A DNA stretch of 63,592 bases, the filler included, from Choristocarpus tenellus KU-1152 (Eukaryota; Protista; Phaeophyceae): NCBI GenBank assembly GCA_964200185.2. It is 9 parts of 9 records of this genome, joined end to end, with 100 filler letters (N's around TTAATTAATTAA, not from the genome) between each part and the next. Parts side by side here need not be neighbours in the genome. Positions count along the whole stretch, not along the records: positions 51,812 to 59,552 come from CAXNAD020005652.1; 8 more parts are not named here. One strand, written 5' to 3'. The notes beneath the pieces are model-generated. The model made no database searches. It worked only from the letters and a program-made list of their open reading frames with translations, and was not told the origin of the DNA. A program made the translations under genes and the position numbers. This document shows, in pieces, positions 51,812-59,552 of the stretch. Positions within the stretch are counted from its first letter, which is position 1; each line of letters starts with the position of its first letter.

Positions 51812-51875
51812 TATCACAACATTGTATTTTGACCCCCAAATGGACGCGGCTCTACCCTCTAAGATACTTTGACTC
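51812..51875 (+). mobile_element. MITE family A right end (cut by contig start)
   Basis: CCCCCAAATGGACGCGGCTCTACCCTCTAAGATACTTTGACTC. Confidence 0.88.
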
Positions 51876-51926
51876 ATTACTACTCTTGCAACTGTTGCAA
51901 CTGTTACAACTGTTACAACTACGCAG

Positions 51927-54900
51927 ATGGAAGGTCTACGGTTCTCTGTTCAGAGTTTGGATGGTATGCTATATGAAGACCAGGAATGGGGATATGAAAG
52001 GATCGGTGACAAGGGGCAAGAAATTGACATCCAGGATATGATGGAAGGGGAATTGATTGATGGAGATGTTGGGGAGGGAGGAGGAGAGCAAGAGCTCCAT
52101 GGTGTGCAACCAGACCGGATACAAGAACTGTCTTCACTGTTGAGGAGGATCAAGGCAGCTATTCGAGACGCGGATAGAGTCCTTCCGGAGGCAGAGGTAT
52201 GGAACCAGAGAGTTTTTGATAGGTGCTGGAGCGCTAATCAAGGACATACCATACTTTCAAGGATTTTGTAATCTCATCCACTGCTGCTTGTCCTTGGCAA
52301 TAGTCGTGTAATTCATTCAGCACTACTCTGCAGAACCTCATACCTGTGCTTGAAGTCACCTGTTAGGATTATCGCCCTGCCAGTGAATTCCAGTGCACCG
52401 TAGACAGACCCTTCCCTTTCGAGACCATCTGCAAAAAGCAATTATGGGAAGAATATTGGAATTGATTTTCATGTCCACGGTTGAGACACTGCTACTGCAT
52501 GCAGCAAGAAACACAGGGGGATACGCACACAGGGGGATACGCATGCAAAGAGATGCAATTCCTGCGCACGTTCGTCAAAGACCACCTTCGTAGGTGTTGT
52601 TTGTGGAAATTGATGTATCCGTCCAACCAATGCTTGACTAGAGAAGGTGGAAAAGGCAGCTGTTGAAGTAGCGCGTGAAGCCGCTGGGACAGCCTTGCGT
52701 ACCAAGAACACAACGTCGGATGCAGCACGACAAGCATTAGGTGGCCTTGGTGACAGGGTTCACCTTGAGATTCTTGGAGGGAAAGGGAGTACGACCGTGA
52801 AAGGAACACCAATCTGGGTGACCATCCTTGTAGGTGTGCAGAGGTGAGTTCTCTTGTCCAGTACAACTCGTAGGTCTTGCAGCTGGGCGCCAGGCGCAAA
52901 AGGGTACAGATAAAATGACCGCCTTCCACATATTTATAAAAGGTATCACAATTCTGTTTGCTTGTCTTTCCGTTGTGTATATCAATGAGCAGCATGATGA
53001 ACATTGAGACTTACTTGTGAAAGGTTGATTCAGCCTTCTAATGCACTATCTAAACCCAGGTGGGGGGTGCATCTGCATAAGTATTTCGGACCAGGCTATG
53101 GGATTGAGACCCAGATGAAGTATAGGTTAGGGTGGCTGCACATCTCGGAAGCAAGTGGTTGTGGTAGTGTTAGTAAGAAGGAGGAGAAGATCAACGCTGG
53201 TGTACAACTGCCCAAAAAATACCAATGGAGACTCTTTGGACACAGCAGCAGAACAGATCTGCCAAGTGAGGTAGGGGAGTAACAGGATCGGCATCTATTG
53301 TCCCTGATTGTGGGGCCTGGTGTGATCCTAGTGACTGTTTCCTACTGATCCATAATTTTCTTGTTTGTTAGAAATTTTTTGAAAGTTGATTTTAGCTGCG
53401 AAAAGATTTTGTTGCGTGACACCTGAATTCTTGTCCTCCTACAAAATTATCAACCGATATCGACTAATTAATTTTTATTGAGCTCACTATCAGCAGATAG
53501 ATTGTTGGACAATTTTTCGTACCAAGTGTAGCATTGCCGCTTGCTGGGTATTGGGAGTAAACGTTGGACTACATGCGAGAGAAGTTTGAAGAATTATTAT
53601 TATTATTATTATGTTCTTATTCCACCTTGTGTCAACTTCAATACATATTATTCTTGCGTATAGTTTCTTGTGAAAAATCGTTGATTTAAAAAAGGACCAA
53701 CCTACAGAGTCGAAGTATATCAGGGTTAGGGCAGAACCGCGTGCGTCCGTTTGGGGCCCAAAATCCAATGTTGCGATATTGATTTAATTTTGGCTATCGT
53801 GTTTGTTAGGAAGTGTCCATATCCTTCCTCCGGACACACCTTCTCTTAACGTATACACTTTACCTACTCTGAACTATTTTGGAGTAGAAAAAAAGTCATA
53901 ATAAAAAACCCGTGGGAAGCCAAGCCCCAAACGGAAAAACCGGGCGAGACTTGGACCCTCTAAGATACTTTCACTCTATACTTGTTCTGGACACACTTTT
54001 TCATAACGTATACATTTCATATACTCCAACACATTTTGGAGTAGGTAGAATGTCATAAAAACACCCGTGGGAAGTCAAGCCCCAAACAGACAAACAGGGC
54101 AAAACTTGTACCCTAACCCTAAGATACTTTCACTCACACTCTTCCCAGGAAAAAATGAGAAAAAAAAACAGATGAGTATCTCTCATAAAAAAAAATCAAA
54201 TTATTTCTGATCTTTTGAACAGGGTACAGGAACCAACGTGGAGGGGTGGGTGGGTACCATAACGTGCAACTACATTGAAGCACACTCTCTCGTCAGTCAT
54301 CACAACCAAGGTAAGGAGGGTGCATGCCAACAGTCAGAGGTTCTGTTATTATTTGAGCATTTTCTGTCTCCATACAGGGTGGATGGGATACCGGTCCTGT
54401 GACTGGGTTGTGCCTCGGAACATTTTCAGTAGTGAAATAGTGTTATGTAGTAGGTAATAGGTGCATGGAACCGGCTCTAGGGTAGTTGCTACTTTTGAAG
54501 TAGCATGTCACTTTGCATGTAACTCGATAGGTCTGTGGCCATTTCTTGCATGTATCATGTCATTCTGGTGTTCTAAATGATGAAGTCAGAGAGGGTGCAT
54601 CCCAATGGAAGGGGAGAGTGTGTTACTTGATGGTGTGTTATTTGGTGGGATGCCATGCCTTTACCCAGTGTGTTGTACCTCTCTACCACAAGGCACAGAT
54701 CCATCACCCAGTGAGAGGGTGTTGTATCAAGGGTAGTATGCACTACATCATCACCCTGCAAGGACTGTCAGGCTACTAATAGATGGCTTGTGCAGCAAAG
54801 GTCAAATTCACAGACTCTGTTTTCTAGACCCCCACAACTAAGAAACAATTTGTAAGGATTTGTCTGGCCTATTGGTGATATGTCATCTAGCCGAACCACT

Positions 54901-57900
54901 AGCATTTAAGAATGAAAGTCGTGTACACTGTACAGTGATCATTTTCAACCAATGGGCAGTATGTATGCATGTATGCATATGCACTCAAGTACATTGGTAG
55001 TATGTATGTATGTATGTATTATGTATGTATGTATGTGCATTCAAGTACAGTAGTAGCACACGTTTGCATGGAAAGTACTCTTCAAAGTACACACAACAAG
55101 AAATATTAAAATTTAATGCAAAATTATTCTTATGTATTACCAGAATTGCTTAACTATTACTAGAACTGCTTAACTATTGCTAGAACTACGTAACTATTAC
55201 AAGAACTTCTTAGAGTGAAAGTATCTTAGAGGGTACGAGTTTTGCCCTGTTTGTCCATTTGGGGCTTGGCTTCCCTCGTGATTTTTATGATATTTTTCTA
55301 TTCCAAAATGTTTGGGAGTAGGTAAAATGTATACGTTATGAAAAGGTGTGTCTGAACAAGGATATTGACACTTCCTAACAAACACGATAGCCAAAACTAC
55401 ATCGAAATCACAACATTGGATTTTAGCCCCCAAATGGATGTGGCTCTACACTCTAAGATAATTTGGCTCTTAACTATTACTAGAACTGCTTTACTATTTA
55501 CTACTGGAACCACATGTTACAAACATCATTGCGTTTGTGTCAGACTTGGTGCTGTTTACACAGACATTAGAAATGATTTTCACACCTTTAACATCCACCA
55601 ACAGAATAACTCTTGCATCGTAGAAAAATGGACACCAGCATGCAACATAACAATAAATGTGATCGCAAAGCGTGCTGCACTTGCCGAAAGCAGACACCAC
55701 AGAAGTCTAACCCTAACCCCTAACAATATCACCTAAGCAATATATTTTATTGCACTTACAATTTCCTTGGAAGCGTTTTTCTTGTTCTATTGTCCCTCCA
55801 TTGCAGGCGTGTACAATCATGTGTATTATCGCCATGTGCTTGTACTTCAACAACAAAACGTGCATTTCAATTGAACATAAGAAGTGCATGAGTCATTTCT
55901 CACTGGCACTGATTAATCCTGATCTAACACTGGCACCAGATGAGGAGTACTGTGAGGCCAGTGATGGGCAAAGTCGGGATAGCGCCTTTAATCAACAGAG
56001 CCCTACCCCAGATGACTCTCCAATGCCTGTACCTGAGGACAGGAGGTGGTGTGGGGGGCATGTGTGCTTAAGGTTACGACCAACTGGCCTGAAGGAGGGG
56101 ATCAAAGAGGGTAAGGGTAAGGATAGAGGTGTGGGGGGAGGTGTTCAAGGAGGGGATATGAGTGAAACAGGTGTCCAAGCAGGGGGTAACACAGAGGGAC
56201 AAGGCGAGGAGGAAAGGGAAGGCTCACTCAAAGACACAGTGGTAGAGGGAGGACAATGGGGGAAGAGGGCTGAGGATGAGAGGAACAACTCTACAATTGA
56301 TGCTGAGGCAAGTGTAGGACAGCATACATACAGTGATATAGTGGTTCATGGATAAATTGAAGTATACCGTGGCTTGTACTCTATGACAGCCAACTCTTGA
56401 AAAGCTTGTCCCGGAAGCGAGTTGGATTAAAACAATCTTGAATCTCAAGTGCCATTCATGTGGCATCTTGCTATGCCCGTGTTCTGCTCTTAGAGGTTTA
56501 GTGAGTGAGATGGTCTCCATTCCCCTTTCAGCTCCTGCTGAACTAATTTGGATTTAACTAAACTAATTTGGATTTGCCCTTCTTTTCTCAACTGCTTTTG
56601 TACACTCAACTGACTTCAGCCTGGAGGGGTTTCTACCAAACGATGCCTTCCCTGGGGACACATGTAGATACATGTAGATAAGGTTTGAGGTCAGAAAGAT
56701 AGCTCAAAGGAATTAGAAATCACTCTTTTCTAAATCCCCTGACACGCCCTCCTCTCCCTCGGGTACTATTCACACTCATTCTGGGGCGGTTTAACTCTCC
56801 TTTTGCTGACAGGGAAGCATCAACAGAGTCAGCATCACTGGTGGCACCATCACAGGCTCAAACAGAAAAACAGTGGATTCTGTAAGGCAACCAAGTACAG
56901 CTCACACAAAGGGTGTTCCTCTTTCAGAGGTGGTGGATGAAGTTGGTTGGGGTAGCACTAGTCAGGTGAGAGGCCGCATTAGTTGTACCTCGTGTTCAAT
57001 AACCAACGCCTGTGAGGGTGTGCCGTCCATCGGAAACTTTGACATGACGGAAGAGGCGTGGTCTAGACCTGGGACATAGTCACGTTTTTCATCTTGTTTA
57101 TGGCAGGTGTAGCTCTGTGTGTGTGTGCGTGCGTTTTTTTGTGCGGTTTGATGTGTATGGATTGTAATCGTGAGATAAAGAAAAAAAGAGGTGTGTGCAA
57201 CATTTGTAGTGCATTGTAGTATATGGAAACTACGCAGCTTGGCATACCTGGAAAGTCACAGAGAATAGCATGACCGACAAAGATTAGCATGACAATATTG
57301 TGTGTAGCATGCCACATGCAGTCAAGAGTGATGTGCTGCTGTGTACTGTGATATTGGTTACACTGCTCTGTTCTACAACATCGGAATGTGATAAGAGTTC
57401 GGTTCTAGCATGATATGCATTGGACTCCCTGAATAGAGGATCACCAACCCACCGCCATCTATATATCTGCCGTATGTCAACGATGTGTTCTTCCAGAATA
57501 CCCTCGTTCAAACGAGCGTGTCTCCCACTCTGTGCTCCAACTCGTTGGAGGCCTTTGGTTGGGGAGACAACAGTGATGGTTGTCTGGGCTTCTCAGATGA
57601 GACAGCCATGGCTCTTTTCCCAAGAGCGCTTGATGTGCCTGGGATATTATTGCCTGGGGAAAAGGTGGTGGCTGTTGCTTGCAGCGACAGGTGACGCCAC
57701 TGAATAAAATAAAAAATAAAAAATTGATCACTCACATTCATCACTGTAAGTAAGTAAGCAATGCGTGCCTGATTGAGAATAGCCGGGTAGCTTTTTTTTT
57801 TTTTAGCTCTATGTGCTCTATGTGCTCTATATGCACACTGTGGGCTATCGAAATTGTATCGTTATTTGTTTGGTGGAGTACAATACACCCTTTGGCCTCA

Positions 57901-58137
57901 TTAGGACAACAGCTACAGATTTTGTTTATTCAATCACTTTCATCAATCACGTTCATTGGCTTCTGTCTCTCACGAAGTGCTAATGAGAATGATGCCCCAC
58001 ACCATGTTCTTCTTGTGAATCAGGCATTCGGTATTGGTGACACACATGGGCAATGTCTATGCTGCAGGGGATGGGGGCGATGGGGCACTGGGTACTGGGG
58101 ATCAGATATCCAGAAGCAGTTTTGTTCTAATTGATTC
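51927..58137 (+). CDS. Large RCC1-repeat protein (partial)
   Basis: Phase-compatible exons 51927-52196, 52647-52843, 53060-53270, 54223-54310, 55940-56307 (GC donor), 56813-56965, 57497-57690, 58024-58137; RCC1 repeat AFGWGDNSDGCLG...KVVAVACSDRHSVLVTHMGNVYAAGDGGDGALGTGD; upstream exons less certain. Confidence 0.78.
53707..54135 (-). mobile_element. MITE family A copy (53707-53976) plus tandem partial copy (about 53979-54135)
   Basis: Two right-hand TIRs; outer TIRs carry telomeric variants CAGGGTTAGGG (53721) and ACCCTAACCCTAAG (54110). Confidence 0.88.
55143..55510. repeat. ~20-bp tandem repeat (GAACTGCTTAACTATTACTA) interrupted by a family A MITE
   Basis: About 3.5 units before 55213 and about 2 units after 55469. 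Confidence 0.85.
55213..55469 (+). mobile_element. MITE family A copy
   Basis: Full-length, TIRs intact. Confidence 0.92.
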
Positions 58138-58228
58138 GTGAGTAACTGTAGGAAGGCTGAAGGACATGGGCTAGGAAGAGTTATTGTGGGCTATGCAACT
58201 TCATGAGACAGGCATACCACTGAGTTCT

Positions 58229-58487
58229 GACACAAAGCATATAAGAGGGTACGACTTTTTGCCCTGCCTGTTTGTTTGGGCTTTGACTTCCCATGAGTTT
58301 TTTTCTGTTTTTTGTGCCCCCTCTTTCAGTTTTCTGTATGAACACTAACCCTAACCCTAACCCTAACATGTATACGACTATGAAAGGTTTGTCCAGGGCA
58401 AGGATATTGACACTTGCTAATAAACACAATAGCCAAAATCCATCAACATTGCAACATTGGACTTATTACCCTAACATGCTTTGGGTC
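58229..58487 (+). mobile_element. Diverged MITE family A copy with internal (CCCTAA)n
   Basis: Family A body; ctaaccctaaccctaaccctaac at 58345-58367 occupies the central segment. Confidence 0.8.
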
Positions 58488-58713
58488 TCTTATTTACTTT
58501 GGATACTACTGATATGGAGTACGTTTTTACTTTTTTGTCCAGTTCCTATTTTTTTTGTTGGGCTCTTGATTATTGACACAGTTCCACCTGTGAAGTGATT
58601 CAAAAAATCAAATGAAGAACATAGAAAATGTTTTTGTGACAGTATATCACCACAGGTTCCTGGGTCATGAAATTGAACCCAGGTACCTACACAATGTGGA
58701 CTAGTGCAGAGGG

Positions 58714-58755
<42 letters not shown>

Positions 58756-58790
58756 TCATCTATCTATCTATCTACCTATTTATCCATCTT
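58714..58790. repeat. (TCTA)n microsatellite
   Basis: Direct tetranucleotide run. Confidence 0.93.
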
Positions 58791-59112
58791 ATGGATCAGG
58801 CACAGGAAAGTGAAAGCATTACGAGCATTGGTCAATGCTGGTAGGAACTATGTACCAACACCCCCAATGTGCTGAGAGCAAGGGACTACTTCCCATTGAC
58901 TTCTTGCACCATCAGAGTCCCGTGGTGTTCCTATTTGACCTTCCTGGTGACATGTACATGAGAAGTATGTTCCTATTCAAGAGTCAAGTTTCTGTTCATC
59001 ATTTTTGATTAAAAAAAAATAATTGGGTACGATACAGTTTGAAGATTAAAATATCATAATTGTGTACGCCAAACAAGTTAATTTATTATTATTATTCACA
59101 TTTTTTATTTGT

Positions 59113-59387
59113 GAGTGAAAGCAAGTATCTTAGGGTTAGGGTAAGAGCTTTGCCCTGTTTGTCCGTTTGGAGCTCGACTTTCCAAATATTTTATTGTAAC
59201 ATTTTACCTACTCCGAAATATTTAGGGTTAGGGTAAAGTGTGTACGTTATGAAAAAGTGTGTCCGGAACAAGGATATTGACACTTCCTAACAAACACGAT
59301 ATAGCCAAAATTACATCAAAATCGCAACAATGGATTTTGCCCCCCAAATGGACGCGGCTCTACTCTAACCCTAAGATACTTTCACTC
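59113..59387 (+). mobile_element. MITE family A copy with TTGT TSD and three telomeric insertions
   Basis: TTGT|GAGTGAAAG...TTTCACTC|TTGT; TTAGGGTTAGGG at 59130 and 59222; CTAACCCTAAG at about 59365. Confidence 0.92.
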
Positions 59388-59552
59388 TTGTACTCACTCT
59401 AGCAGTTCATTACGCCTGTGATCCAATCCCCAACCCTAACCCTAACTCCAATAGCACCTTTGCAATTGTCCTCACCCCCCCCCCCCCCCCCCCCCCCCCC
59501 CCACCCCCACCCCACCCCCCCCCCCCCCACAATCCAAACCGAGGCAACAGGG

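Follow-up and report, generated by a model that had tools for sequence, protein, structure and literature searches.

Telomeric GGTT variants in the terminal inverted repeats of an intronic MITE family of Choristocarpus tenellus

Telomeric insertions at double-strand breaks carry 1-8 bases that are in register with the broken site, also where they lie within repeats and are judged by the repeat consensus (Nergadze et al. 2007, PMC2246262; Santagostino et al. 2020, PMC7215372). Such in-register microhomology has been described as the signature of telomerase acting at breaks (PMC2246262). The locus studied here, in the phaeophycean Choristocarpus tenellus KU-1152, most closely resembles these short interstitial telomeric sequences (short ITS; PMC2246262, PMC7215372) in that in-phase TTAGGG units occupy internal positions, the insert continues the register of bases already present in the unbroken site and the ancestral state is taken from a repeat consensus; as in some short ITS, a deletion accompanies the insert at one internal site, in the copy called c6 below. 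It differs from them in that the gain at the element ends is no more than 4 bases, short of a full unit, placed between two half-sites, and in that this gain recurs at one and the same position within the transposon terminus. Moreover, the ‘empty’ state is given by paralogous copies instead of orthologous loci, so that the polarity read from them is tentative.

The element itself may be compared with Tourist-like MITEs, which are non-autonomous PIF/Harbinger elements. It shares with them a length of about 260 bp, the lack of coding sequence, terminal inverted repeats (TIRs) whose pairing reaches about 55 nt, many diverged intronic copies, one TTA target duplication and variants that arise from small changes at the ends. 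In contrast to these elements, the variant found here consists of a telomeric dimer, only one of the three testable copies has a clear TTA duplication, and no autonomous partner was seen in the piece analysed. Among the Oxytricha TBE elements, DNA transposon subfamilies differ by a small change, an indel, in the telomeric part of both TIRs (PMC4724952), and here too a telomeric repeat stands in both TIRs. However, the TBE repeat lies at the very tip in chromosome-end orientation, whereas here it begins 18 nt inside the left end of c6 (13 nt in the other long ends), with its G-rich strand running 5' to 3' inward; TBEs are also autonomous Tc1/mariner elements of ciliates, whereas our element is a non-coding MITE. 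A TBE-like element was therefore rejected, since the repeat is internal to the end and directed inward. Finally, yeast SiRTAs (PMC10055226) are hotspots of de novo telomere addition, in which internal telomere-like seeds, such as those of the present locus, attract telomerase after a break; there the outcome is a new chromosome end with loss of the distal arm, whereas here both flanks were kept.

The MITE family and its genomic setting

The window, that is the whole stretch of DNA, comprises 63,592 nucleotides in nine joined parts, and all the counts given below refer to one piece of it, positions 51812-59552 (CAXNAD020005652.1; 7,741 bases). This piece has 43% G+C and a CpG observed/expected ratio of 0.43. 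TG and CA are in excess across it, and several differences among the MITE copies are CpG transitions; taken with the CpG depletion, this suggests cytosine methylation of the region. A plus-strand, intron-rich host gene spans the piece and all MITE copies are intronic. Two of its exons contain RCC1 repeats (Pfam RCC1, E 4.9e-05) and have GT..AG borders:

57497-57690, plus strand, RCC1-repeat exon
58021-58135, plus strand, RCC1-repeat exon

A word-indexed protein search found no relatives of the RCC1 exon, and an exhaustive protein search found no close relative, the only matches being distant multi-repeat RCC1 proteins with at most 48% local identity, aligned to that exon alone. The word-indexed search also found no relatives of a 201-aa exon-like ORF of the piece, and the piece had no match in Rfam. 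The piece further contains (TATC)n / (TATG)n-type microsatellites at 58714-58790 and 54955-55030, an intronic direct duplication of 15-16 nt at 52514-52545 (GGGGGATACGCA-type) and, at its terminus, a cytosine run of about 55 nt with a few A interruptions (59476-59535), 30 nt past a short telomeric tract.

Alignment and an nhmmer family profile identified six copies of a non-coding element of about 260 bp with terminal inverted repeats:

51812-51875, plus strand, c1, truncated at the boundary of the piece so that the right end alone remains, short state (alignment, nhmmer)
53707-53976, minus strand, c2, mixed, left end short and right end long (alignment, nhmmer)
53977-54135, minus strand, c3, truncated and adjoining c2, left end long, right end missing (alignment, nhmmer)
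55213-55469, plus strand, c4, short at both ends, TTA duplication (alignment, nhmmer)
58234-58498, plus strand, c5, degenerate and oldest, left end short, site of the right end lost (alignment, nhmmer)
59113-59387, plus strand, c6, long (+GGTT) at both ends (alignment; nhmmer 59117-59386, E 2.7e-79)

The element thus has the features by which MITEs are recognised: several dispersed and diverged copies under about 600 bp, terminal inverted repeats and no coding capacity of its own. Indeed, the copies are crossed by short chance ORFs only, and the ORF that runs across c4 had no relatives in the word-indexed protein search. The 23-nt ends pair with each other (inverted repeats I20, I21 and I17; in c6, I20 joins 59123-59143 to 59361-59381) and the predicted fold of the element is a long hairpin that joins both ends (z = -3.9). 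A 12-bp palindrome lies in its interior (repeats I12 and I14; predicted fold of c4). A clean 3-bp TTA duplication flanks c4 (55210-55212 and 55470-55472) within a 20-bp minisatellite, TTGT stands on either side of c6, and around c2, whose left flank is the truncated c3, no duplication is clear. The element is probably a Tourist/PIF-Harbinger-like MITE, a type that is indicated by the c4 duplication and that the flanks of c6 and c2 do not confirm.

Pairwise identity among the copies is 76-84%, short flanks included, and their distance to a local consensus, which understates the true distance, is 4-9%, or about 30% for c5. Judged by this divergence, the MITE copies are old. The 20-bp minisatellite on either side of c4 (55129-55208 and 55470-55508) was the target of its insertion, and a related 12-bp repeat follows c1 in register (51876-51925; family D5, 76% over 107 nt). 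Given these related repeats in register 3' of both, an old segmental duplication, and not two independent insertions, may account for c1 and c4 together with their right flanks. At the junction 53976/53977, the complete c2 stands head to tail with the truncated c3 in the same orientation; the remainder of c3 is missing beyond c2, which excludes a simple nested insertion. The left tip of c6 (59113-59125) carries 4 extra bases, GAAAG-CAAG-TATC instead of GAAAG-TATC, a partial duplication. Searches for further copies found no match to an internal 22-mer among viral contigs, where a DNA pattern search gave one chance match, in a phage gene; no match among metagenome contigs to the internal 22-mer or to an end pattern permitting both states; and no DNA-pattern match in a collection of genome contigs. 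A literature search with the MITE end sequences returned nothing relevant.

Short and long states of the element ends

The 23-bp TIR occurs in two states. In the short state TTAG directly abuts AGGGTA; in the long state the 4 bases GGTT stand between them, which creates two in-phase TTAGGG units. Nine ends are readable, five short and four long, and in a tenth, the right end of c5, a deletion has removed the TTAG/AGGGTA site. The short-state ends, located by pattern search, and the long-state ends are as follows:

51853-51869, short-state end
53954-53970, short-state end (left end of c2)
55219-55235, short-state end
55447-55463, short-state end
58235-58251, short-state end
59130-59141, plus strand, left end of c6, long, perfect (TTAGGG)2, extra GGTT at 59134-59137
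59363-59374, minus strand, right end of c6, long, TTAGGGTTAGAG with one G>A, extra bases at 59367-59370
54111-54122, left end of c3, long, perfect dimer, extra bases at 54115-54118
53720-53731, right end of c2, long, TCAGGGTTAGGG with one T>C, a later substitution, extra bases at 53724-53727

The original prediction, made from the sequence alone, was that GGTT is gained at exactly the TTAG/AGGGTA point, in both TIR types and sometimes at one end of a copy only. Within the piece four ends carry the extra bases at this point (dimers at 59130-59141, 59363-59374, 54111-54122 and 53720-53731); left and right ends are both affected, and c2 is mixed. A fifth predicted site, at about 31018, falls in another part of the window. 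The family therefore includes short/short (c4), short/long (c2) and long/long (c6) configurations, together with c3, which is long at its left end and lacks the right one, and with c1 and c5, which were placed with the short copies. The insert has the same size (+4) at all four long ends and is never +10 or +16, and two of the four tracts, those at the right ends of c2 and c6, contain a substitution. The right end of c6 starts with GAGTG, as left ends do, while the other three right ends start with GAGTC or GAGCC.

The GGTT insert is in register with its surroundings, TTAG upstream and AGGGT downstream, and it is not a tandem duplication of the adjoining bases. Of the other small insertions in the copies, three in number, two are in contrast plain tandem duplications (ACGC in c2 and AT in c6), the third, CAAG in c6, being a partial one. 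This difference makes a telomere-templated origin of the founding insertion or insertions plausible.

It is conceivable that the long state is ancestral, with a telomeric dimer in the TIR that was bound, for example, by a Myb-type protein, and that the short state derives from it by a 4-bp deletion. The short state is telomeric at 9 of 10 bases, which is more readily understood if a dimer has decayed than if a seed arose by chance, a random 4-bp deletion requires no template, and transposons with host telomeric repeats in both TIRs, including subfamily variants, do exist (PMC4724952). However, the identical 4-bp deletion would be required at both ends, it would have occurred without flanking microhomology and would not have removed a whole repeat unit, and the repeat is directed inward, opposite to the orientation of chromosome ends. 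Moreover, c5, the oldest copy, is short at its left end, and the short state, which had been called the majority, accounts here for five ends against four. We therefore regard an ancestral long state as quite unlikely.

Telomeric tracts inside and outside the elements

A search for (TTAGGG)2 with at most one mismatch gave 10 matches in the piece where 0.06 were expected, and in-phase telomeric tracts of at least 8 nt numbered 10, compared with 1.2 in shuffles. Telomeric dimers are therefore more frequent in the piece than expected by chance, and this excess is statistically solid. With 10 matches against 0.06, and with the long state present at four separate ends of three copies that have different flanks, chance or an assembly artefact is an extremely improbable explanation. 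Six of the eight tracts of about 12 nt or longer lie inside the MITE, which makes up 16% of the piece. In addition to the element ends, the longer tracts are:

59222-59233 (tract to 59234), plus strand, internal telomeric dimer of c6, TTAGGGTTAGGG (alignment, tract scan)
58345-58367, minus strand, internal telomeric tract of c5, 23 nt or 3.8 units, pure insertion
55707-55719, minus strand, interstitial telomeric tract outside the MITE (repeat D13, tract scan)
59432-59446, minus strand, interstitial telomeric tract outside the MITE, 45 nt 3' of c6 (12-mer and tract scans)

The change of an internal site of c6 to a telomeric dimer had also been predicted and was found at the expected place. Here the internal palindrome has lost about 9 nt of its right arm and received 10 nt of telomeric sequence in their place, the left arm being intact (59203-59214), and TT is in register upstream. 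The tract of c5 lies about 10 nt from this site in the opposite orientation and has no in-register bases. Since the two differ in length (12-13 nt in c6, 23 nt in c5), in orientation (the top strand is the G-strand in c6 and the C-strand in c5) and in type (a replacement and a pure insertion), they look like independent and ordinary short interstitial telomeric insertions, that is, scars of break repair. The internal palindrome probably drew both insertions as a fragile site. No telomerase-RNA-derived flanking bases were seen beside the tracts. Two shorter candidates for added ‘edits’, an 8-mer in c5 (58468-58475) and a 9-mer at 53125-53133, were dropped, as chance alone would give about one tract of this kind and the divergence of c5 is 30%.

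A templated change might instead have come about without telomerase, by short-patch gene conversion or by polymerase template switching such as occurs in theta-mediated end joining, from a telomere-like tract or from another copy, in a neighbourhood that is possibly subtelomeric and rich in such tracts. Telomere-like tracts are indeed very dense in the piece; c6 alone has three dimers, with a fourth tract 45 nt downstream, and its left end and internal site share 15 identical bases that include the dimer. However, the piece shows no donor that shares longer flanks, the short-state consensus offers no GGTT template in cis, and the tracts occur in both orientations. Repair of this kind, templated but independent of telomerase, seems to us improbable as the source of the long ends.

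Proposed origin and spread of the long ends

We consider that there is about an even chance that the long ends are inherited variants which were founded by one or two telomere-templated insertions. Each end of the source elements would have gained GGTT a single time, or one end alone would have gained it and passed it on to the other through pairing of the two inverted repeats; the long variants would then have spread by transposition, so that most of the present long ends were inherited and not re-made. The founding insertion was probably telomere-templated: if the host telomere repeat and telomerase template are as we assume, a single round of telomerase synthesis (GGTTAG) would have extended a 3' end at ...TTAG, and the extended end would have re-joined on the AG of AGGGTA, with a net gain of 4 nt. 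Vertebrate-type telomerase adds GGTTAG per round to a primer ending in TTAG. A gain of 4 nt by this route is thus chemically reasonable, since a TTAG end extended in this way can re-join on the AG of AGGGTA.

The distribution of states among the copies is compatible with a nested history, from short/short to short/long to long/long, that would require two events only. The informative sites among the six copies are few and conflicting, the splits at odds with this history being as many as those in its favour: three sites group c3 and c6 against c2 and c4, two group c2, c3 and c6 against c4 and c5, and the parsimony-informative splits for the three groupings of c2, c3, c4 and c6 number 3, 2 and 2. 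By pairwise identity, the long copies are no closer to one another than to the short copy c4. As left and right ends are both affected, either a minimum of two identical events is required or a single event with copying from end to end, and this need for the same 4 bases to arise twice or to be converted is a point against inheritance. The left-type base at position 5 of the right end of c6, together with the hairpin, gives a hint of such end-to-end conversion, in which case a single founding event would suffice. The substitutions in two of the four tracts are what would be expected if the tracts were as old as the copies. On the other hand, the concentration of tracts in the MITE and the deletion at the same site in the right end of c5 would fit a fragile site that was repeatedly repaired.

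That the site was repeatedly repaired is the core of another explanation, in which the copies break again and again between TTAG and AGGG after their insertion, telomerase extends the 3' end, which re-anneals further downstream, and each long end is a separate edit. Long ends are found in both end types and in the mixed copy c2, the inserted bases are exactly in phase without duplication, and the in-register microhomology is the mark described for telomerase at breaks (PMC2246262). Telomeric tracts also occupy three positions of the element, with four further short tracts elsewhere in the 7.7 kb, and the right end of c5 is deleted at the very site. However, each end would have to undergo about 0.6 events while single-base changes accumulated to about 0.08-0.1 per site, so that a seed made of two half-sites would be a hotspot outpacing point mutation several-fold. 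The outcome is +4 in all four cases and never +10 or +16, even though the long state would be the better seed; two of the tracts have already decayed; and a break 17 nt inside the end has no known cause. Such recurrent editing of individual copies is unlikely in our view. We hold in similar doubt the more general proposal that telomerase, or another telomere-templated repair, repeatedly fills internal near-telomeric half-sites into perfect dimers, with a high-copy MITE recording many independent events.

The idea of a telomerase-style edit put forward in the original prediction is therefore supported in part. The in-phase position, the fact that GGTT is not a duplication and the occurrence at two places in the element speak for it. 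Frequent editing of one copy after another following insertion is, in contrast, unsupported: the copies share 76-84% identity, the four long ends show an identical +4, decay is seen in two of these tracts, and the nested history fits. Inheritance of the long ends from a small number of founding insertions is the reading that we prefer.

To conclude, the GGTT end variants of this MITE are real and mildly unusual, and frequent telomerase editing is unproven. If the long ends were inherited, GGTT would simply be a convenient marker for a subfamily of a MITE that is ordinary in other respects, and the internal tracts would provide further examples of short telomeric repair scars outside mammals. 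If the ends were instead re-made copy by copy, telomerase would be a site-specific mutator at internal seeds, an effect that would be measurable in any genome with the transposon consensus as the ancestral state. Should the filling of half-sites prove recurrent, the MITE would provide a natural record, across the genome, of how telomerase acts at internal breaks.
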